A stretch of DNA of 64,000 nt, taken from positions 1,302,001-1,366,000 of the forward strand of contig OZ218961.1 of NCBI GenBank assembly GCA_965112735.1, in the 5' to 3' direction. The DNA comes from Phaeosaccion multiseriatum. Its lineage: Eukaryota; Protista; Ochrophyta, other classes. The position numbers and the translations under genes were made by a program. Of the stretch, positions 47,637 through 60,647 are shown piece by piece (the stretch's first letter is position 1; each line of letters begins with the position of its first letter). Under the pieces are notes generated by a model. The model did not search any database, was not told where the DNA came from, and saw only the letters and a program-made list of their open reading frames with translations.

Positions 47637-50563
47637 CAGTAGGGATACTCGGCTGTCTCCTCCTGGGATTGCACGGCTTTCTTCATTTTTGGAAGTTACA
47701 GAGGGAAATTCGGAGCCGAACCCAAGCCCCGCGGCGCCCTTGTATGTCAATTAACCGCCCTGGATGTCAGTAGGACCGAAATTTTCAGTCAATTTTTTTT
47801 CATCGGCTGGGGCGCGTGAGGGAGGAGATGAATACTAGATACAAGGACTATCCCAGACGAAGCGCTTGTGCAAGCTTGAGGAAAACACAGTGAACTCGGG
47901 ATTAGGCAGCTGAGAGCGTGCTCGCAGCAGCTTTGTGGCAAGAATTAGCGGGTGAGCTGCAAAGGTGCGTTTTTCGCCAACCTTGGTTTCGAGAGAGAGA
48001 GAGGACGGAGGGGGGTATACCCATAGAGATCAGCCGTGGGCAAGATAGGATCTCTTCTCCAGGAGTATGCGAAACTTTTCATATGCGTCGCATGCTCTTC
48101 CGCCTCCAGCTCGTCGGCACTTTTGCCCCTGAAGTTAGGGTACTCCACCTTCACAGTTGGATGTCTCTGAGACGTGGACACTGCTCTATTCTACCGATTT
48201 TCAGGGCCCATGAGGGCGTCATCTCGTCCGCAGGACACGTCTGATGACCCCCGTACCGCTGCTGTCCATGGGCGGGGGGCAAGAGGTCTATGGCAGGTCG
48301 TCACCCGAGGTGGCCGAAAAGGTGAGGGCGCACGAGAGGGGGAGAGGGCGTGAGATGGAAGGCTTCGCCTGGCAGTTACGAGCGGGGCAAGAGGGATTAA
48401 CATCACTCATATATAGCCTGGCTTGTGACCAAGTTTTAGCTTCAAAGGTCATAATCCCATGTGCACAATCGCATACGTGTGCTCCCCTCTCTTTTGCCTG
48501 TGAAGGGTCCTTTTTGTGAGGTCATGAGCAGCCGATCCCACGCCCTGTCAGAGCATCGGTCTTGCTCAAGGGGCGTAATACTAACTCCCCTGCCCCCTGT
48601 TATTGCGGGACGTGGGTGGTGGGGCTATCGGGGGGACTTCGACATCTTCTCCCGAGGTCACTGCACAGGTGGCGAAGTATGAGGGTGGAGAGGAAAGGGA
48701 AGGAACCTTCCCGGCAGAGTCAAGGGCGACACAAGGTATGTTGTGGCATCTAGTGTGTGAGTTGTCAGATGTCCAACTTTCAGCTTCAGCGAGCTTAACC
48801 AGACATGGGAAATCACCTCGTGTCCACCTCCCTAATTTTGGCCCCGTCGGTTAGGTCATCACGAGGGTCATTACCGGGGCAGGAGAACGACTGCGGCGAC
48901 CATCCTGCCTCTCTTCAGGGAGCGAGAAGGTAAGGAGCAAGGGGTTCACGAGCGGCAGTGGCCAGACGAGCGGGGGGAAGAGAAGCAGGCGTCCAGATAG
49001 AAGTCAAGCTTATCCGCCTCGTCGTCCACCCCGGGGGACGCCGTTGCTGCACGATCAGCTGCAGCTCCTCTTGGCTACTGCGGATGAGCGTGCTCGTATT
49101 GAAGCCTACCAGCCACGAGTGAGAGAAGCTCAATCAAGCAGCAGCTGGACGCGCCATCGGCTGCCGAGGCGGCCATGGGAGCTGAGCCGGAGAAAGGGGG
49201 GGGGGGTAGCGTGCTGTTGCTGTGGGTGGTGGTGTTCGTCGTGGCACATGGTCGAAAAGCGAGAATGACTCAGGGGCGACAGGACGATGAGCCGCAAGGC
49301 CATACTCAAGTCGCTGACCGCCCTGTATGCAGAGAAAGTGGGGTGGAGGCCGTGGCAGGGGGGTTAGGAGCTGCCAGAGGAGGGCTTGGCGGGCTACCGA
49401 GACGGATTTCGCAGGTAAGACGGAGCCTCGTGCAGCATCTATAGTAGTAGTAGCTGTAGCAGCACCGATAAGGGGAGGAGGGGCAGTGTGTGTACAGTTG
49501 GAGCTGCCCATCCGTGAAATTGGGTTAAAATGACGAATATACACATAGATAGCGTTGTAAATCGCATCCTCGCCAAGGAGAGCATGTAAAGAGTACCAAA
49601 TCGGCGCATGGTCATGAGGTATAGCCTCGCGTTGTATCTGGCCCATATCTATCGTCATACCCTCTCTTCCCCCTCGATCGAGGGTCAGGATGACGACGAA
49701 AAGGGGCCCTTCACACTTGTAAATTCTCTCCCTCACTCTGTAGCTCCTGAAAGGACACTTCGAGCTGCCCAGCACTCAGCAGACTATGTATACCTCAAGT
49801 CTTCTCAAGGGTTTCATATCTCGTGGTCTGCTGGTCGCACACGCTCCTCCCTCTCCTCACCATTTTTGAGGTGAAAACTGCTGCCATATGTGTTTCCATC
49901 TCGCCTCACCCCTTCTGCTCCACAGCACCTGCAATCGCACTCTTAGCTGCTCAACGTCGACTTCCATATGTGGGTCGCAGTCTGCTCAAAGCCATTCCTC
50001 CCTCATGGGCTCTTGCTCGCACACGCTCTTCCCCCACTCCCCCCTTGTTTGAGGCCCAAATTCCCGCCAAAGCAACGGACATTTCAGCTCCACATGTTAG
50101 CCCACTATCTCCTAAGACCGCGCTCCCAGCTTCACATCGGCTATTTGACTACATAATCCGTATTCAGCCCGAAGATTATCACCTCTTGTGTGAGCTACGC
50201 CTCTCTCTTTCTCCCTTGTTCAGGGGCCAAGATCTCGTCAACATAGCAGCACATTTCACCTCCTAAATCGCTCTATACAGACGCAACAATCAGACTTTAA
50301 GCTGCTCAACATCTAGAATACTGTCTTTGCCTCAGATCTCCCGAAGCGCTTCGCCTGTGGTGCTCTGTAGCGTGCGTAATACCTCTTTTCCTGAGCCCAC
50401 TCAAAATGTTGATTCTACTGACATCCAGGGCGGTTAATTGACATACAAGGGCTTCCCTGTTCTGTTGACTTATTACTCCTCCTCCCACCCTGGATCGATC
50501 AACCCTGTGTAGAAGAGAGAAAAAGAAGAAACGAAGCCCTTGCTGCTGCTTCTATTGCGGACC

Positions 50564-52848
50564 ATGTGGTCGCCGGCCCAGAAGAAGCGGGTACGGACGG
50601 ACGGGCAGATCAGCCGCGAGGAGTACGATCACAACAACGGGCAGCAGCCGCAGGTACATTCTTTCACACTGTAGCCCCCCCCCCCTACTCCACCAATCAG
50701 GGGCTACAAAAGGGGGCAAGTCCTCCACATTGTGGCAGCGTCTTTCCCATATTCTTCTCAGTCTCTTTCTCTCCCCCTCCCTCCCTCCCTCTCTCTCTAT
50801 CTCTTGCCTCTGCATTGCATATATGTTGTGATCTTACGCCTGTTTCTGAAGGGCGGCAGCGCTGGTGCTGTGCATGGATTTGCGCGAGCCGATGCTGCGA
50901 CTCTGGCAGGCAGGAGGATGGTGACCGGCACCCGGAGGAGCAAGAGAGACGAGTTCCTGCGCATGGTGAGTGTGGAGCCGAGACGAGCCGAGAGGAGGAG
51001 CCTGGAGAGGAGGGGGGTCTTTCGCTGTTAGCGCGTCGGGCTAGAGGCTTTCCGTCCATTCTCCGAGGAGCAGAGTCGAGCAGCACACTTGGCGGGCAGC
51101 ACTCGGGACCTGTGGTCTCTTGTGTAGTGCTGTCTGTGCTGGTGCGGCCCACCCACTTCCCTCCGCCGGCTTTTCTCTTTGGTCGATGTATGGTTCCTCC
51201 GCTGCGGCGCTGCGGATGTTCCGTGGTAACCCTTCATGCCCGATGACCCTTCCCCGTTGCCGTACTGCACCTTGTTTCGCTTGCTGTGCGGTGCTTTCCT
51301 TCCCCGTCGCTGTGCTGCTCTTCGTTTTGCTTTCCTGCCCCATTGCTGTACTGTGCTTTGCTGTGCCTTTGCTGCGCTTTGCTGTGGCAGGTCCGCTCTC
51401 TGAATCAGAACTTCGCCGCTTGGGTTGCTGAGGAGCTCTCGGCAAGCGAAGGGGCAGACCTCACCGCCGGCGTGCTCGACTACATTGCGTGAGTGGGGGA
51501 GTGCGTGGGTGTGTGAGTGGCGTGAGTGTGTGAGTGAGTGAGTGAGTGAGTGAGGGAGTGGGTGAGTGGATGAGTGAGTGGGTGAGTGAGTGAGCAAGGA
51601 AGTGAGTGAGCGATTGAGTGAGTAAGTGTTGCTTATTATTAGGCTGCTTTGGCTGGGTGTGGGCATTGGTATGGTTGGGCATTGGCATGGTATGGTTGGG
51701 CATTTGCTTGGTATGGTTGGGCATTGGCATGGTATGGTTGGGCATTGGCATGGTATGGTTGGGCATTTGCTTGGTATGGTTGGGCATTGGCATGGTATGG
51801 TTGGGCATTTGCTTGGTATGGTTGGGCATTGGCATGGTATGGTTGGGCATTTGCTTGGTATGGTTGGGCATTTGCGTGGTATGGTTGGGCATTGGCATGG
51901 TTGGGCAGTGCCACTCCGTATGGGGATCCTCGTGGCCCACGCCTTGGGCCCTTCCCTTCCTTTGCAACAAAGGGAGGGGGGGACGAATACCCACTCACGA
52001 ACTCAATCCCTCCCTCCCTCCCTGTATCACTCACTCCTTCACTCTCTTATTCGCCCTTGAAGGTGGATTGACTGGACAATTATAATGAACTGATTGATTG
52101 ATTGATTGAGTGATTCATGGATTGGCTCACACGCAACACGCTCAGGTGCCCCTGTTTCTCGTCCCTCCCTCCCCCCCCCCCCCGTCCTTCCCGTCCCTCG
52201 GCCCCCCTCCCCTCCCCTCCCCTCCGTCCCTCTTGTCTCTTGTGTATGCGTGTGCGTGTGCGCGTGCGTGTGCGTATGCGTATGCAGCTACGTGGACAAG
52301 CTGGAGGGGCGCTACTTGAGAGGGCCAGGCATGGTGCTCACCTTCGGCAACGGTAAGGCAGTAAAAGTCAGCCGTCTGAAGGCAGAGAGAGAGAGAGAGA
52401 GTGGCCACACTGCATGCGATGAGAGGGGGAGATCAGAGAGAGAGGAAAGGGTGGAGGGAGAGGCAGAGAGAGAGAGGCAGAGGAAAGGGGGAGGGAGAGA
52501 CAGAGAGAGGGAGAGAGGCTCGGGAAAGGGGGGAGGGAGAGACAGACAGAGGGAGGGGAAGAGGAAATGGGGGAGGGAGAGAGAGCGGGAAAGAGAACGA
52601 CCGCACTGCATACCATGAGAGGGGATGATCAGAGAGAGAGAGAGGAAAGGGGAAGAGAGCGACAAAGAGGAAGGTGCTTTCTTCTCTTCCCTCCCCCTCC
52701 CTTCCTTCCAACTCCACTCAACCTCCCTCTTGTCCTCCTCCCCCTCTTGCTCCTCGCCAAGGTGACTGTGGCCAGCTGGCCCACGGTGACGAGTCTGACG
52801 CAGACCTGAATGTCAAGTACGTTCCTACCCATTTTCCTCCTCCTCCTC

Positions 52849-52891
<43 letters not shown>

Positions 52892-55800
52892 TGCACGGGT
52901 TGTTGCTTCCTCCTGCTCCTCCTGCTGCTCCTCCTGCTCCTCCTCCTCCTGCTGCTGCTCCTGCTCTGGTCGTTGCTTCTCCTCCTTTCTCCTTCTCCCC
53001 CTCCTTCTCTTCCTTTTCCTCCTCCTCCTCCTCCTCCTCCTCCTCCTCCTCCTCCTGCACCACCACCACCACCGCCTCCACCCTTCCCGTTACACTGACC
53101 ACCCACCCCCGTCTGTCATACTGGTGACTCCCACTCCTCTGCCGCATCGCTATACTCCTGCGCACCCCTATATCCTAAATCGAGCCCTACTGACCTGAAT
53201 GTTGAGCTCCCCGATATCGACACTCCTGACCCGTATGCCTACAATATGCATCTCCCTAACCCCTAAAGACTCTACCACACCGACCTCCCTGACCTGTATG
53301 CCTATGATATGGACCTCTCTGACCCGTACACCTACAAATATCGACCTCCCTTCCCCACATGTATTCCTACAATGTATCGACCTGGCCTGACCAATAAACC
53401 TGCATGACCCATATTCCTCCACCTGAAGGTACCCCCGCATCGTGGAGTCGCTTAGAGACAGACAAGTGGCGGCCATTGCTTGTGGGGGGCTCCACAACAT
53501 TGTGTGCATGCAGGATGGTGAGGATGGCAGTGGATGGGGAGGGGAGGGCGAGGAGAGGAGTGTGTGTGTGTGTGTGTGTGTGTCTGAGGGTGTGTCCGTG
53601 TATGGTACGCTCTCTGTCTCGCTTCCGTTCCTCCCTTTGGGCACTACGGGAACATTGCCAGCTCTCTCTCTCTCTGTGTGTGTCTCTCTCACTCTGTGCG
53701 TGCGTATGTGTGCGTCTCTCTCTCTGTGCATGTGTGTGCATGTGTGTGCGAGCAGGGAGCCTGTGGTCGTGGGGTTGCAACGACGATGGAGCGCTGGGGA
53801 GGAGCGGCTCAGAGACACAACCCTTGAGGGTGTCAGAGGTGCTTGGAGATGATAGGTGAGGGAGGAGAGGAAGGGGAGAGGAGAGAAGAGAGATGAGAAG
53901 AGGAGGAGAGCATAGCAGAGGAGAGGAGAGAAGCGAAGAGAGGGGAGAGGAGAAGAGGAGGAGAGCATAGCAGAGGAGAGGAGAGAAGCGAAGAGAGGGG
54001 AGAGGAGAAGAGGAGGAGAGCATAGCAGAGGAGAGAAGCGAAGAGAGGGGAGAGGAGGAAGAGGAGGAGAGCATAGCAGAGGAGAGAAGCGACGAGAGGG
54101 GAGAGGAGAAGAGGAGGAGAGCAAAGCAGAGGAAAGGAGAGAAGCGAAGACAGGGGAGAGGAGAAGAGGAGGAGAGCATAGCAGCATAGCAGAGGAGAGG
54201 AGAGAAGCGAAGAGAGGGGAGAGGAGAAGAGGAGGAGAGAAGCGAAGAGAGAAGAGAACAGGGAGGAACGGAGAAGAGGAGGAGAGTATATCAGAGGGGG
54301 GGAGAGGAGAGGAGAGAAGAGAAGAGGAGGAGGGCATGGTAAAGGAGAGGAGACAAGGGAAGAGGGAGGAAAGGAGAAGAGGAGGAGAGCATAGCAGAGG
54401 AGAGGAGACGAGAGCAAATCAGAAGAGAGGAGAGGAGAGCAAATCAGAAGAGAGAAGAGAAGAGCAAATCAGAAGAGAGGAGAGGAGAGCAAATCAGAAT
54501 AGAGGAGAGGAGAGCAAATCAGAAGAGGTGAGAAGGGAGGGAGGGATAGGAAGAGAGAGAGAGGTTAGGGAGGAGGGAGGGTGAGAGAGGGAAATGGGAG
54601 TGAGAAGGGGAAAGGCAAGAGAGAGAGGGAGGACGGAGGCAGAAGGAGAGACGCAGAGACAGGCAGGCAGAGGGAGAGAGGGAGAGAAAGAGGGAGGGAG
54701 AAAGAGCCCACCCACCTGCTTGCGCTTGCAGGCTCTGGCGCTCTGCCCCGGCCCCGATGTCTCGAACCACTGCTTGCCTTGTTTGTCCCTGTAGGAGCCA
54801 AAGCCGTACACCGTGCCCGACAGACACACGCTCTTCGTCTTTGCTCTCTTTTCCGTGTCGTGTTTCAAGCCTTGTTTGGTACATTGACTCAACTCCTTGC
54901 CCCTCCCCCCTCTCCCTTCCCCTTCCCCTTCCTTCCTCCATCCCCCACTCTCCCGTCCCTCTTCCCTCCCCCCTCTCCCTTCCCCTCCGTTCCTCCATCT
55001 CCCTCTCCTCCCCGCAGTATCGTGCAAGTGGCGGCGGGTGACGTGCAGAGCATGGCAGGTGTGTGTGCGTGTGTGTGATTTTGTGTGCATGTGTGTGTGC
55101 ATGTGTGTGTACGTGTGCCGCTATACGAAATGCCATCTGTAGACTCTCAGGAGGGAAGTGGACAGCACAATGTGACTATTCTTCCCTGAGAAGGAAAGAC
55201 TCTCTCCCTCCCTTGCTCGCTCGTCCTCTCTCCTTCCACCTCCATGTATTCTGCATCCCTTATCTTCTCTCTCTGCCTCCGCCTCTCTCTCTCGATCTCT
55301 CTCTCAACTCTCTCTCGCTGTGTGTGCGTGCGCGTGCGCGCCTTTGCCGATTGCAGTGGGTCTGTCGGGCACGGTGTACGGCTTTGGCTCCTACAAGGAC
55401 AAAGAAGGCAAGCAGTGGTTCGAGACATCGGGGCCGGGGCAGAGCGCCAGAGACTGCAAGCGCAAGCAGGTGGGCTCTTTCTCCCTCCCTCTTTCTCTCC
55501 CTCTCTCCCTCTGCCTGCCCCTCTCTCTGCGTCTCTCCTTCTGCCTCCGTCCCCCCTCTCTCTCTTGCCTTCCCCCCTCTCACTCCATTTCCCTCTCTCA
55601 CCCTCTCTCCCTCCTCCCTAACCTCTCTCTCTCTCTCTCTCTTCCTATCCCTCCCTCCCTTCTCACGCTCCACGTCCAAAACCAACCCACCTTCAACCCC
55701 ACCCCCCACCCCTCCCTACTAAGACCACCCCAATGATCGTGCCGGGTCTGAACGGAGTGGTGGAGGTGGCGTGTGGTGCCTCCTTCAACCTTGCCCTCAC

Positions 55801-55942
55801 GCAGGACGGAGCTGTCTATTCCTGGGGCATCGGAGAGACAGGCGAGTTGGGCAGGCCAGTGTCCGACATGAAGGTGGGTAGTAAGTCAATGGGTGGGCGG
55901 GTGCGTGGGTGGGTAGGTGGGTGGGTGCGTGGGTGGGTAGGC

Positions 55943-55976
<34 letters not shown>

Positions 55977-58900
55977 AGGTGGGTAGGTGGGTAGGTGGGT
56001 AGGTGGATTTTTTGGTGAGGTGGGTGGATGTGTAGGTGGTATGGCTGGGACAGAAACACGCTGTATGACTCTCCCCATCTCCCCTCCCCTCTCTTCTGTC
56101 CCTTCTCCCCTCTCTTTCCTCGCCCCTCCCTCCTCCCGCCTGTCCCGCCTCCGCCCCTCTCTCTCCCTTTCCTGTCGCCTCTGCCCCCCCACCCTCGCCT
56201 TCACCCTGCTCCCCCTCTCCTCTCCCTCCTCCCCGCTCCCCTCTCCCTCCTCCTCCCTCTCCCCTCCTTCCTGCCTGTGATGTCCGGACACTCCTCCCCT
56301 CTCGTCTCTGTCCTGACACCTCTTCCCTCTGTCGTGTCCTGTCCCCTCTCCCCTCCGTTGTGACATTCCTCAGGACTCCGACGGCGAGTACAGATTCGCG
56401 GACATTCAGCGCACACACCTCACCCCACAACGCATGCTGGACGACAAGAAACAGGTCAGTCACCCAGTCACTCAGTCGCTCAGTCACTCAGTCACTCAGT
56501 CACTCAGTCAGTCATTCACCCACTCACCTACTCACTTAGTAACTGTCAGTCACCCAGTCACAGTCAGTCAGTCACTCAATCACTCAGTCAGTCAGTCACT
56601 CAGTCACTTAGTCAGTCAGTCAGTCACTCACTCAGTCACTCAGTCACTCACTCAGTCACTCAGTCACTCAGTCACTCAGTCAGTCAGTCAGTCACTCAGT
56701 CACTCAGTCACTCAGTCAGTCAGTCAGTCACTCAGTCACTCAGTCAGTCACTCAGTGAGTCAGTCAGTCAGTCACCCACTCACCTACTCACTTAGTAACT
56801 GTCTCTCAGTCAGTCACTCAGTCAGTGAATCAGCCAATCATTCACTCACGCAGTCACTCACACACTCGGTGATGCAGTCATTCACTTGATCAGTCAGTCA
56901 GTCAGTCAGTCAGACAGTCAGAAGATGTGTCTCCATTCTCGTTTCTCTCTGTGGATCCCTCTGTCTCTCTCTGTGTGTGTGGATTGACCCCTCTTTTCTT
57001 CCCTCTTTCGCTCCCTCCCCTTTTCTGCGTCTCTTCTGCGTCTCTTTCTCTCTCTCATCACCCCCCCCCGCCCTAACCCTCCCTTCCTCCTTCCCTCCTT
57101 CCCTCCTTCCCTCCTTCCCTCCCTCCCTCCCCCTCCCTCCCAACATTCCGTCCCTTTTTAAAGGCGGTGGTCGGTATCAAGGCGATAGGGTGCGGCGCCT
57201 ACCACTCCCTCGTGGTGACTGCTGTCGATGCACACGTCATGTCCACAGGCCTCAACAACTACGGTCAGCTCGGCCACGGCGATGAGGTCAACAGGGATAC
57301 TCTTCGCACCATTCAGGTAGGAGGAGAAGGAGGAGGAGGAGGAGGAGGAGGAGGAGGAGGAGGAGGAGGGGGAGGAGGAGGAGAAGGAGAAGGAGGAGGA
57401 GGAGGAGGAGGAGGAGGAGGAGGAGGAGGAGGAGGAGGAGGAGGAGGAGGAGAAGGAGAAGGAGGAGGGCGAGGAGGAGGAGGAGGAGGAGGAGGAGAAG
57501 GAGGAGGAAGAGGAGGAGAAGGAGGAGGAGGAGGAGGAGGAGGAGGAGGAGGAGGAGGAGGAGGAGGAGGAGGAGGAGGAGGAGGAGGAGGAGGAGGAGG
57601 AGGAGGAGGAGGAGAGGAGGAGAAGGAGAAGGAGAAGGAGGGTGGACGAAGAGGTGCTTGCGTGTGCGCGTATCGACCCCCTTTCCTGACTTACTGGTAT
57701 TCTTCTGAACTGTATGTATGGCAGTTTTACTGATATGCTACTTAACTGTATGTATGGCAGTCTATGGGCCCACCCGTCCAGAGCGAGAAGCACATCCCAA
57801 ACACGCAAAGTAATGTGCAAGCCCTCCTTCCCTGACTTACTTCTCCCCCTCCTCCTCCTCCTCCCCCTCCTCCTCCCCCTCCTCCTCCTCCTCCTCCTCC
57901 TCCTCCTCCTCCTCCTCCTCCTCCTCCACCTCCACCACCACCACCACCTCCTTCTTCTCAGGCGCTGGAGGGTGTGGGCGTAACCCAAGTAAGCGGAGGC
58001 ATGCACCACTCCCTCGTGCTCTCTCTGGGCTCTCACAGACTGCTCTCCTTCGGGAGGAGTGATTCGGGTCAGCTGGGCTGTCTCGACACCATCCCGGCAG
58101 CAGGTACTGATGTGTGTGTGTGCATGTGTGCATAAATGTGCGTGTCACATATTATTACGTATTCCAGGGTAGGCTTCTCTAGCGATTACCTGTCTGACTG
58201 ACTGACACCAGGTACTGAAGTACTGACTGGGTGGGTGGGGATGGGTGCGGCTGAGGGTATTTTCTCTCTCGCATCGATACCCAAACTTTACAACGTCTCT
58301 GCCCCGACTCTCTGCTCTCTGCCCATATGCCTCTGCTCTATGCCCATATGCCTCTACTCTATGCCCAAACTTAACCACGTCTCTGCCTGACTCTCTGCTC
58401 TCCACCCATCCTCCGCTGCTCTCTGCCCATGCGCCTCTGTTCTCTTCTCTCTGCCGATATGTCCCTGCTCTCTGCCAAATGCCTCTACTCTATGCCCATA
58501 CGCCTCTGCTCTCTGCCGAATGCCTCTGCTCTCTACCCATCCTCCTCTGCTCTCTGCCGAATGCCTCTACTCTATGCCCATACGTCTCTCCTCTCTGCCG
58601 AATGCCTCTGCTCTCCACCCATCCTCCTCTGCTCTCTGCCCATACGCCTCTGTTCTCTTCTCTTTGCCCATATGCCTCTACTCTCTATCCATACGCATCT
58701 ACTCTCTGCCCATACGCCTCTGCTCTGTGCCCTGCCCGCACACCTCCATCACTCTCAGGAGCCTTCGAGAACCTTCCCCGTGAGGTTTCGTTGTGTGGTG
58801 AGGAGGCCGTGAGCATTGCGTGTGGCGCTAACCACAGCCTCGCCCTCACCCAGGGGGGCAAGCTCTACTCCTGGGGGTATGGAGACATGTACGCGTTGGG

Positions 58901-60647
58901 GCACGGTAACGACAAGGACCAGGTAATGTTATGTAATGTTATGTGTGTGGTGATGTTGAGTTCATGATGATGGTATGTGTGTGGTATTGTTGAGTGCTGA
59001 GTGGATGATGATGATGGTGGTGATGGTCATGGTCAATGGTCATGGGCAATGGTCATGGTAGCTTGGTTGGTTTGAAGTGTTCTCTTGGTCGTGTCATGGT
59101 AGTCTGGTTGATTTGAAGTGTTACTTTTGGTGTGTTTCATGTGTGGGGAGACACATCGAGTTGCTCACCAAGTGAGCTGGTCACAGGTGTGGGTATGGGA
59201 AGTGTGTATGCGTGTGTACATCATCGACTTTAGGTCATCAGTAGTCGCATTGTAGGGATGGCAGTGCATGCATAAATGTTCGTGGACTTTTGAATGTCTC
59301 TTCTCCGCCCACCTCCCTCCTGTCCTCTCCATCTCTCTTTCCTCCCCTCTCTCTCTCCTCTCACTCTTTATCTCCCTCCCTCTCTCTCACACACACACAT
59401 ACGCACACTTCCTTATCTTCTCTCGTTTTCTTTCTCTCACACACTTCTTTATAATTTCTCTTTTTCTCTCACACACACACATACGTGCACTCTCTTATCT
59501 TCACTCTTTCTCTCTCTCACACACACACATACGCACACTTCCTTATCTCCTCTCTTTCTCTCTCCTCCACCCCCCTCTCCCCTCTCTCTCTCTTACCCCC
59601 TCACCCTGCCCACCCCTCCCCCCAAAGTGGTTGACTTTATTATGTTGCCCCCCTCACTTACGAAGGATTGTCGCCGTTTACCATCACCCCTTTACCGTCA
59701 CTCAGAGCAAACCTCGGGCGCTTAACTTCAGCAAGGCGGGGTTGGACAAGGTGAGTGAGTCAAAGAGTGAGTGAGTTGAGTGAGTGGGTGAGTGAGTGCG
59801 TCAGTGAGTCAGTGGGTGGGTGAGTGAGTGGGTGGGTGAGTGGGTGGGTGTGGGGGTGAATTGATGGGGGTCAATTTTCCAAAGCTGACTCTGGTCTCGC
59901 AGAGCGAAGAATGCCGAACTCAAAGGTGATCTTCGCTGAGTGAGACTCCGTGGTACACAGCGATAGGAGAGGAGGGGAGAGAAGAGGATAGGGGCGGAGA
60001 GGAGAGGAGAGGAGAGAAGTCAAGTGGAGGGGAGAGGCGAGAAGAGCAAGAGAGGAGAGGAGAGTTGAGGGGAGGAGAGGAGAGGAGAGAAGAAGAGAGG
60101 AGAGAAGAGAGGAAGAGGAGAGGAGAGAATAAGAGAGGAGAGTTGAGGAGAGGGGCAGCCCTTTGTGGTGGGCGCCATGCCGCGCTTTGTCGGGTGTTGC
60201 TTGTGAGGGTCTTTGGCTTTGGTTTCTCTCGGCCTTTCCCTGTCATCCCTTCCTTTCTCTTCGGTCTCCTTCCACTGCCATCCCTTCCTTTCTCTTCGGC
60301 CTCCTTCCACTCCCAGCCTTTCCTTTCACTTCGGCCTCCTTCCCCTGCCATCCCTTCTTTTCTCGTCGGCCCTCTACTGCCATCCCTTCTTTTCTCGTCG
60401 GCCCTCTACTGCCATCCCTTCCTCTTCTTGTGCGCTCAAGTGTTCCCCCCCCTGGTCCCGCCGTATCACCAACTGCTGTATCGCCAACTGCTGCCCCGGC
60501 CCCTACCTGCCCCTTTGTCTGCCCCCCGTTCCTGCCCCTGTGGGTTGCGTCGCTCGCCCCCGTGCGTAGGTGAAGGTTCAGGCCTTCGACGGAGGGGGGC
60601 AGCACACCGCCCTAATCCTCGGGCAGGGGCTTATCTCCAGGAGGTGA
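50564..60647 (+). CDS. RCC1: RCC1 (RanGEF) with N-terminal NUP50/Nup2-like domains, 16 exons, frame intact
   Basis: Exons 50564-50653, 50852-50965, 51391-51488, 52288-52352, 52762-52816, 53429-53517, 53756-53855, 55018-55058, 55357-55469, 55724-55873, 56374-56454, 57164-57316, 57962-58103, 58759-58922, 59706-59750, 60570-60647; GT-AG and phase-compatible. RCC1 motifs: CGGLHN, WGCNDDGALGR, VQVAAGD, FGSYKDKEG, GLNNYGQLG, GGMHHSL, GGGQHT. Confidence 0.9.
51655..51905. repeat. 21-bp intronic minisatellite (ggtatggttgggcattggcat / ...tttgctt)
   Basis: About 11 tandem copies of two variants, no unique spacers. Confidence 0.92.
53870..54525. repeat. GA-rich intronic minisatellite (gaggagagcatagcagagg... 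and agagcaaatcagaag...)
   Basis: Direct inspection. Confidence 0.85.
54528..54825 (-). repeat. Inverted copy of RCC1 exon 9 plus downstream intron, located in intron 7
   Basis: Reverse complement of 55360-55666. Minus frame reads LSGTVYGFGSYRDKQGKQWFETSGPGQSARACKRKQ. Confidence 0.92.
58300..58735. repeat. ~21-bp intronic minisatellite (tgcctctgctctctgcccata)n
   Basis: Direct inspection; a related unit occurs at ~62600-62730. Confidence 0.85.

Follow-up and report, generated by a model that had tools for sequence, protein, structure and literature searches.

A predicted fusion of a Nup50/Nup2-type N-terminal half to RCC1 in Phaeosaccion multiseriatum and other stramenopiles suggests recharging of Ran at the nuclear pore

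RCC1, the counterpart of which in yeast is Prp20/Srm1, is the guanine-nucleotide exchange factor of Ran (RanGEF) and recharges this switch of nuclear transport; Nup50 of vertebrates and Nup2 of yeast are nucleoporins of the nuclear basket. That vertebrate Nup50 binds and stimulates RCC1, as a first sequence-only reading of the DNA described here had stated, is confirmed by the work of Holzer et al. (2021, PMC8634129), in which amino acids (aa) 1–114 of Xenopus Nup50 bound RCC1 and approximately doubled its activity, with a requirement for G25/F27 and K36/R38. The same study (PMC8634129) found that aa 144–189 of the Xenopus protein target the nuclear pore complex (NPC) and that 46 residues form the minimal region binding the NPC, Nup153 and ELYS, with residue 178 being critical. 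Here we describe a gene of the ochrophyte Phaeosaccion multiseriatum, located at 50564–60647 on the plus strand of a 64,000-nucleotide window (contig OZ218961.1, positions 1,302,001 to 1,366,000; assembly GCA_965112735.1), whose predicted product joins these two partners in a single chain. We read it as the stramenopile form of RCC1, with a Nup50/Nup2-type N-terminal half in place of the usual short N-terminal tail, and put at roughly 70% the probability of this reading together with the role that we propose for the head.

The exon model was fixed by splice sites and phase, with the DNA from 49800 to 54500 read and the plus-strand frames translated to 64000. It describes one gene of 16 exons with an open reading frame (ORF) of 1578 nt, i.e., 525 codons plus a TGA stop at 60647; all 15 introns are GT-AG and of compatible phase, and no exon holds an in-frame stop. 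Positions 50564–52352, where the sequence-only reading had placed the Nup50-like part, run from the ATG of exon 1 to the final base of exon 4 and encode the ~110-residue head from its start to its joint with the propeller, and the peptides quoted in that reading are encoded exactly, in exons 1–4. The exons are:

Exon 1, 50564–50653, plus strand: 30 codons containing ...KKRVRTDGQISREEYD..., with the start codon, a basic KKRVR and an acidic/aromatic ISREEYD; predicted counterpart of the N-terminal importin-alpha-binding segment 1 of Nup50/Nup2
Exon 2, 50852–50965, plus strand: 38 codons containing ...GFARADAATLAGRRMVTGTRR..., including the start of the helical region (SKRDEFLRM); predicted counterpart of Nup50 segment 2, the region with F27 and R38
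Exon 3, 51391–51488, plus strand: 32 codons plus 2 nt, VRSLNQNFAAWVAEEL...DLTAGVLDYI; the part SLNQNFAAWV...ADLTAGVLDYI is predicted to form the first helix and the turn of an NPC-targeting region of the Nup50 type
Exon 4, 52288–52352, plus strand: 65 nt reading YVDKLEGRYLRGPGMVLTFGN; matched by residues 98–119 of the homolog P0241 in tblastn
Exon 5, 52762–52816, plus strand: GDCGQLAHG..., the first RCC1 repeat signature, with the counterpart of human RCC1 D44
Exon 6, 53429–53517, plus strand: RCC1 blade (Pfam RCC1, E=0.0027)
Exon 7, 53756–53855, plus strand: RCC1 blade (WSWGCNDDGALGR; Pfam RCC1, E=3.5e-06, 27.9 bits, above the cutoff)
Exon 8, 55018–55058, plus strand: VAAGD..., with the counterpart of human D128
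Exon 9, 55357–55469, plus strand: beta-wedge region (FGSYKDKEGKQWF...), 8 residues longer than in human RCC1
Exon 10, 55724–55873, plus strand: blade with CGASFN at human N181-D182-H183, and GETGELGR (tblastn E=4e-17)
Exon 11, 56374–56454, plus strand: inter-blade insert (...HLTPQRM...) typical of true RCC1, family consensus HLTPxxM; weak tblastn match
Exon 12, 57164–57316, plus strand: blade (GLNNYGQLGHG; tblastn E=4e-11)
Exon 13, 57962–58103, plus strand: blade with GGMHHS, the counterpart of human H304
Exon 14, 58759–58922, plus strand: blade (SWGYGDMYALGHG; tblastn E=8e-13), with 62% identity to the relative P0151
Exon 15, 59706–59750, plus strand: 15 codons, placed by frame, splice sites and family consensus, with no tblastn match of its own
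Exon 16, 60570–60647, plus strand: last strand GGGQHTA (counterpart of human H410) and TGA

Collinear tblastn matches to P0241, a homolog of 531 aa, cover 15 of these 16 exons, the sole exception being exon 15, and exons 1, 2 and 3 score 25.4, 26.0 and 26.6 bits at the successive positions 2–21, 28–60 and 63–93 of a profile that we built from 57 heads of the family (alignment A1). Based on these two observations, the order and frame of the exons are not a chance reading.

The family itself proved to be large. A search with P0151, a protein found by a word search that took the stop-free frame around exon 14 as its reference and encoded on a 4.7-kb metagenome contig (L001), gave 446 strong matches, and one with the divergent P0253 gave 235; the best 120 matches of each search were listed. 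The full-length relatives listed are of 480–660 aa and more than 150 of them carry the same head of ~105–120 residues, with the consensus MKRxRxDGxxSKEEY ... FxRAxxxxLxxRRxV ... EFxRHxxALNxSFxxW ... DL ... QDYIxY...LExRYLR, directly followed by the propeller motif GEVLTFGSGDCGQLAHG. All named sources among the matches listed were stramenopiles, comprising oomycetes (Phytophthora, Pythium, Peronospora, Bremia, Plasmopara, Aphanomyces, Achlya and Saprolegnia) and ochrophytes (Ochromonadaceae CCMP2298, Tribonema, Pelagophyceae CCMP2097, Pylaiella, Triparma and, with a diverged head, the diatom Eucampia), so that a chrysophyte, a xanthophyte, a pelagophyte, a brown alga, a bolidophyte and a diatom are represented beside the oomycetes. 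The suggestion of the sequence-only reading that the fusion may be lineage-wide is thus supported for the stramenopiles. The Phaeosaccion protein has 53–62% identity to its best listed relatives, the closest being P0198; when exon 14, a single RCC1 repeat, was used as the query, the listing was filled with giant multi-repeat proteins and contained no ortholog. Two relatives from JGI/ENA samples, P0296 (662 aa) and P0301 (648 aa), have a RanBP-type zinc ribbon (33–34 bits against a cutoff of 27) and phenylalanine-glycine (FG) motifs before the head and propeller, and their head is nearly identical to that of Phaeosaccion (KKRVRTDGQVSKEEYD); as predicted, each would in effect combine an FG nucleoporin with a RanGEF in a single polypeptide.

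The family head consists, in order, of a basic KR motif with an acidic/aromatic stretch, an F.RA....L..RR segment and a two-helix region, the vertebrate Nup50 counterpart of which (aa 144–189) binds Nup153 and ELYS and serves in pore targeting (PMC8634129). When each of the 57 heads was scanned alone, 45 matched Pfam PF08911 (NUP50) at E≤1, the best at 1.7e-06, and this was the sole recurrent Pfam family, the next most frequent being found in 4 members. The Pelagophyceae head P0294 scored 23.5 bits, above the cutoff of 22.5, and was the only tested head to pass it; near relatives fell just below (22.3 bits for P0198 and 21.9 bits for P0241), and a precomputed PF08911 match of unstated threshold is given in the database for P0189, P0220 and P0314. 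This was also supported by a search of the head profile against the PDB (177,635 sequences), in which yeast Nup2 ranked first (1un0/2c1t, E=0.025) and human Nup50 second (3tj3, E=0.24), with the F.RA....L..RR segment aligned to the importin-alpha-bound Nup2/Nup50 peptides. Canonical N-termini of this type are MAKRVADAQIQRETYD in yeast and MKVKRTAENQIAKDNYD in Thalassiosira (Neumann et al. 2010 supplement, PMC2951903).

For the helical region we compared the head profile with six non-human central Nup50 segments (48–51 aa), all of which are part of the supplementary alignment of Neumann et al. 2010 (PMC2951903). Those of Ciona, Xenopus, Danio and Apis scored 37.2, 30.6, 29.5 and 27.0 bits, respectively, each in an ungapped alignment across profile positions 57–104, and those of Drosophila and Cryptococcus scored more weakly (16.6 and 11.8 bits). 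The 26.6 bits of Phaeosaccion exon 3 fall within this stretch of the profile. As decoys, unrelated RCC1-like proteins totaling 433,000 residues gave no score above 0.3 bits, and none of 12,000 shuffles exceeded 7.5 bits. The E-values for this region are those of a pre-chosen comparison, because the segments were picked from the region defined in PMC8634129; by counted numbering, the Xenopus segment would start at E144, include the minimal 46 residues and have the aspartate of its KDY motif at 178.

Based on the family Pfam matches, the PDB ranking and the helical-region scores, the likeness to the importin-alpha-binding N-terminus and to the "LN..W..DL..DY" helical region of Nup50/Nup2, which the sequence-only reading had seen in the translation, holds up, and we consider the head homologous to the N-terminal half of Nup50/Nup2 as judged from sequence. 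We also considered convergent similarity and rejected it, given three separate motifs in the same order, one of which is ungapped over 48 residues. Only part of a Nup50 is present, since the head has neither FG repeats nor a Ran-binding domain: exons 1–4 encode no FG-repeat stretch, FG motifs being seen within the family only in P0296/P0301, and the precomputed Pfam lists of ~170 relatives hold RCC1-type families (with PF08911 or PF00641 in a few) and no Ran-binding domain PF00638. Neither Pfam nor the PDB yielded a match to the middle exon of L001 (71 aa) when it was searched alone, and an ESM Atlas look-alike search with the P0241 head, RCC1 families excluded, gave no usable match.

The AlphaFold2 (AF2) model of P0241 (mean predicted local distance difference test (pLDDT) 90.5, predicted template modeling score (pTM) 0.86) gives low confidence to residues 1–50, in keeping with linear motifs whose folding depends on a partner, and ~90 to two helices at 53–82 and 89–106; the first propeller strand starts at 111, so that ~4 residues separate it from the second helix. 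The DY motif and the FGSGDCGQ motif of the propeller are 22 residues apart in 68 of 75 relatives, and this fixed spacing argues for a rigid position of the hairpin on the propeller. All of the 80 full-length relatives compared have the hairpin, 61 have segment 2 and 56–70 have the KR part, so that the predicted pore-targeting element is the constant feature of the head. The subgroup lacking segment 2 includes P0194, P0200, P0202, P0204, P0211, P0217, P0221 and P0223. In Phaeosaccion, FARADAATLAGRR agrees with the family consensus.

From this architecture we propose three steps. The KR and RR segments would bind importin-alpha as in Nup50/Nup2, giving nuclear import and retention beside arriving import complexes; the helical hairpin would hold the exchange factor at the nuclear basket, and RanGTP would then arise at the site where import complexes are disassembled; and segment 2 may contact the propeller in cis and stimulate exchange, much as Xenopus Nup50 acts in trans. 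Support is strongest for the second step, as 80/80 full-length relatives have the hairpin, and weakest for the third, as 19/80 are without segment 2; we infer both the tethering to the pore and the activation in cis. We give somewhat less than even odds to the tentative idea that in stramenopiles the factor recharging Ran resides in the nuclear basket, docked to the pore and to importin-alpha by its head, with RanGTP generated at the exit of the channel and cargo release coupled directly to exchange.

Whether the fused protein stands in for Nup50 bears on this proposal. Neumann et al. (PMC2951903) list Nup50 candidates for the diatoms Thalassiosira (gi 223993929) and Phaeodactylum (protein 48647), which in their alignment show a canonical N-terminus (Thalassiosira MKVKRTAENQIAKDNYD..., Phaeodactylum MGKRRNEQAQMSKEDFE...) and FG motifs. 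As the diatom Eucampia also carries the fused RCC1, diatoms at least seem to have both proteins, and the fusion is therefore not simply a replacement for Nup50. These published candidates and the Eucampia protein are what the check for a separate Nup50, proposed with the sequence-only reading, showed for diatoms. In the oomycetes, the table of Neumann et al. (PMC2951903) gives no Nup50 for Phytophthora infestans, a species that has the fused RCC1 P0270 with Nup50 motifs in its head; the entry nup50_phytophthora of their 2010 supplement is a long helical-repeat-like protein without Nup50 motifs and looks like a false positive.

The most serious alternative, which we regard as unlikely, is that the Nup50-derived head serves as an importin-alpha-dependent nuclear localization signal (NLS) and structural cap, the protein acting on chromatin, as animal RCC1 does, with neither tether nor activation in cis. 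The KR and RR segments would then be a strong NLS, as in the tails of ordinary RCC1, and the hairpin would pack on the propeller. Ordinary RCC1/Prp20 tails are indeed importin-alpha ligands (PDB 5tbk and 5t94 are among our fold matches), the ~4-residue link and the fixed spacing of hairpin and propeller fit a packed cap, and, since a canonical Nup50 candidate bearing FG repeats seems to exist separately in diatoms (Neumann 2010 supplement), the basket function of Nup50 need not sit in the fused RCC1. However, the hairpin keeps the NPC-binding signature over its full length, including the counterpart of the KDY aspartate, and is the most conserved part of the head (80/80), and the pore is also indicated by the relatives to which a RanBP zinc finger and FG motifs are added. 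A nucleoporin context is made more likely by the zinc ribbon and FG motifs of P0296/P0301, which also lend indirect support to the idea of the sequence-only reading that RanGEF would be hard-wired to cargo release and to the pore.

The second half of the protein was described in the sequence-only reading as a true RCC1, and the comparisons bear this out. P0241 aligns with human RCC1 in one global alignment (E ~1e-39), whereas HERC2 matches it repeat by repeat only. In a Foldseek search with the P0241 model, ranks 1–10 were all RCC1/Prp20 (E 2e-37 to 5e-34), with UVR8, HERC and RPGR following at 1e-30 or weaker, their E-values being ~5 orders of magnitude or more behind; for P0151, WD40_RLD gave 258.7 bits and 6 RCC1 repeats were recognized. 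The propeller is therefore, by sequence and model, closest to true RCC1/Prp20. In human RCC1, D44, D128, D182, H304 and H410 are what we take to be the residues important for exchange, a list that reportedly goes back to Azuma in 1999 and Renault in 2001. Counterparts of D44, D128, H304 and H410 are kept here, as is the wedge motif GS(F/Y)(R/K)D (here GSYKD), and Ran exchange activity of the propeller is likely.

We considered it quite improbable that this is an RCC1-like paralog with another job, which is not the RanGEF of the cell and whose head recruits a different activity to importin-alpha or the pore. This possibility draws on the lack of conservation at human D182, on the insertion in the wedge, and on the RCC1-like domain (RLD) of HERC2 equaling RCC1 in summed phmmer bits. 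That HERC2 score is made up of repeat-wise matches, however, and only RCC1 aligns as a single global stretch; the ten best fold matches are all true RanGEFs, the four residue counterparts, the wedge motif and the RCC1-type insert are kept, and among the named stramenopile matches listed there was no headless second RCC1-type protein, although no systematic search for one was made.

Several lines of evidence indicate that head and propeller form one polypeptide. Within exon 4 the Nup50-type helix comes to its end (YVDKLEGRYLR) and the RCC1 part begins with its first strand (MVLTFGN), and exons 5–16 encode the remainder of a seven-blade propeller. On L001, upstream of the propeller ORF of P0151, there is a first exon at 2254–2340 (MAGLKRTRVDGQLAKDAYY...) followed by a single 215-nt exon (2486–2700) that is equivalent to Phaeosaccion exons 2, 3 and the start of 4, and a third exon that starts YLKEYGEVLTFGSGDCGQLAHG; each joint of the head thus lies within an exon in either the Phaeosaccion gene or L001. 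In addition, the MMETSP sequences P0164 and P0267 ("type:complete" transcript ORFs) encode a fused head and propeller, as do intron-free genomic copies of P0220 on two contigs (L002 and L003), and the head is found in annotated proteins of Phytophthora, Pythium, Aphanomyces, Saprolegnia, Pylaiella, Tribonema, Ochromonadaceae, Pelagophyceae and Triparma. Based on the exon 4 joint, the L001 exon and the complete transcript ORFs of related species, the claim that a Nup50-type N-terminus and RCC1 are fused in one polypeptide stands, and we regard the predicted fusion as real. The converse, that a small Nup50-like gene and a neighboring RCC1 were wrongly joined in the gene model, can draw on the long, repeat-rich introns and on a locus without RNA reads but is already contradicted by the intra-exonic joints here and on L001, the intron-free copies and the transcripts, and we give it next to no weight.

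L002 and L003 are contigs of 45–61 kb from the NCBI assemblies GCA_024449665.1 and GCA_024449685.1, respectively, the contig accession numbers of which reach hundreds of thousands or millions, suggesting very large assemblies. One member of the P0220 cluster is labeled Bolivina argentea, a foraminiferan, in EukProt; it probably comes from an associated or contaminating stramenopile and not from the labeled organism.

The introns between 51489 and 60770 contain a micro- or minisatellite in nearly every case. These include (GTGA)n at 51489–51628, a 21-nt unit in 11 copies at 51662–51901, a 55-nt unit in 10–12 copies at 53862–54514, (TCAGTCAC)n at 56456–56920, (AGG)108 at 57319–57641, and units of 21 and 41 nt at 58296–58732. 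Intron 7 also holds an inverted copy of exon 9 and the start of intron 9 (54534–54829, in minus-strand sense, against 55356–55652). The arms are complementary over 182 nt at 85% and over 74 nt at 91%, and the minus strand still reads ...GTVYGFGSYRDKQGKQWFETSGPGQSARACKRKQ; as they flank exon 8, the pre-mRNA could fold back around that exon.

A number of observations weigh against reading the gene as a RanGEF with a functional Nup50-type head. Pfam and PDB searches with the single head exons of Phaeosaccion (30, 38, 32 and 21 aa) gave no NUP50/Nup match, and because of this the homology of the head rests on the family profile; the Pfam check proposed with the sequence-only reading was thus negative on the single short exons and positive only at the level of the family. 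Even there the majority of heads fall slightly under the Pfam gathering score for PF08911. Segment 2 has been lost in 19/80 relatives that kept the KR start and the hairpin, and, of the four Nup50 residues needed for RCC1 binding, the family consensus keeps counterparts of F27 and R38 only. In the propeller, human N181-D182-H183 is replaced by A-S-F, with serine at the D182 position, and the beta-wedge has 8 residues more than that of human RCC1, owing to which full RanGEF competence is an assumption. Finally, no RNA runs covering the locus were found; four matching runs, all from one study, hold 84–88% of the words of a mostly-intron stretch and, since intron words are present too, they are DNA.

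We found no published description of a Nup50-RCC1 fusion in a full-text literature search, most subscription journals being outside its coverage. The fused proteins are public under the name "RCC1-like" and few carry the automatic PF08911 match; being filed simply in this way, their database annotation could be improved. As a conserved natural fusion is strong independent evidence of two proteins working together, the joining of the N-terminal half of Nup50 to RCC1 across a major eukaryotic group backs the recent, sparsely tested vertebrate finding that Nup50 binds and activates RCC1 and suggests that the link is old. It also suggests that Ran may be recharged at the nuclear pore in stramenopiles, such that in diatoms, eustigmatophytes, brown algae and oomycetes, the last including major crop pathogens, RanGTP may arise at the pore basket and not on chromatin alone, which, if true, would change the picture of the Ran gradient and of mitotic Ran signaling in these organisms. 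Were the exchange factor indeed a resident of the basket, the layout of the Ran system would differ from that built on the chromatin-bound RCC1 of animals and yeast, and the partnership of Nup50 and RCC1 would be ancient and common to stramenopiles and opisthokonts. Since head and propeller are already joined, the family offers a natural construct for structural work on the contact between the Nup50 head and RCC1.

Compared with the nuclear-basket nucleoporins Nup50 (vertebrates) and Nup2 (yeast), the head begins with a KR and acidic motif, followed in the same order as there by the F..A....L..R segment and a helical region of 46 residues, and the helical NPC-targeting region aligns without a gap; unlike them, it lacks FG repeats and a C-terminal Ran-binding domain and has instead an RCC1 propeller ~4 residues past the second helix, and only ~10 residues lie between segment 2 and the helices in the fusion, as against ~100 in vertebrates. 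With the chromatin-bound RanGEFs RCC1 (human, Drosophila) and Prp20-Srm1 (yeast) the protein shares a globally collinear seven-blade propeller, for which these proteins are the best matches in sequence and in fold and in which the wedge motif is kept along with most known exchange residues; it differs in the Nup50-type head of ~110 residues that takes the place of the short NLS/chromatin-binding tail and, relative to human RCC1, in a wedge longer by 8 residues and in A-S-F for N181-D182-H183. In comparison with the Nup153/Nup358-type zinc-finger FG nucleoporins, P0296 and P0301 have a RanBP-type zinc ribbon and FG motifs before the head, whereas the Phaeosaccion gene starts with the head and its exons 1–4 encode no zinc finger or FG motif. 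A further parallel is the complex that vertebrate Nup50 and RCC1 form non-covalently (Holzer et al. 2021, PMC8634129), which has the same two partners and in which Nup50 aa 1–114 correspond to exons 1–2; here these partners would be found in a single polypeptide, as a "Rosetta-stone" fusion.

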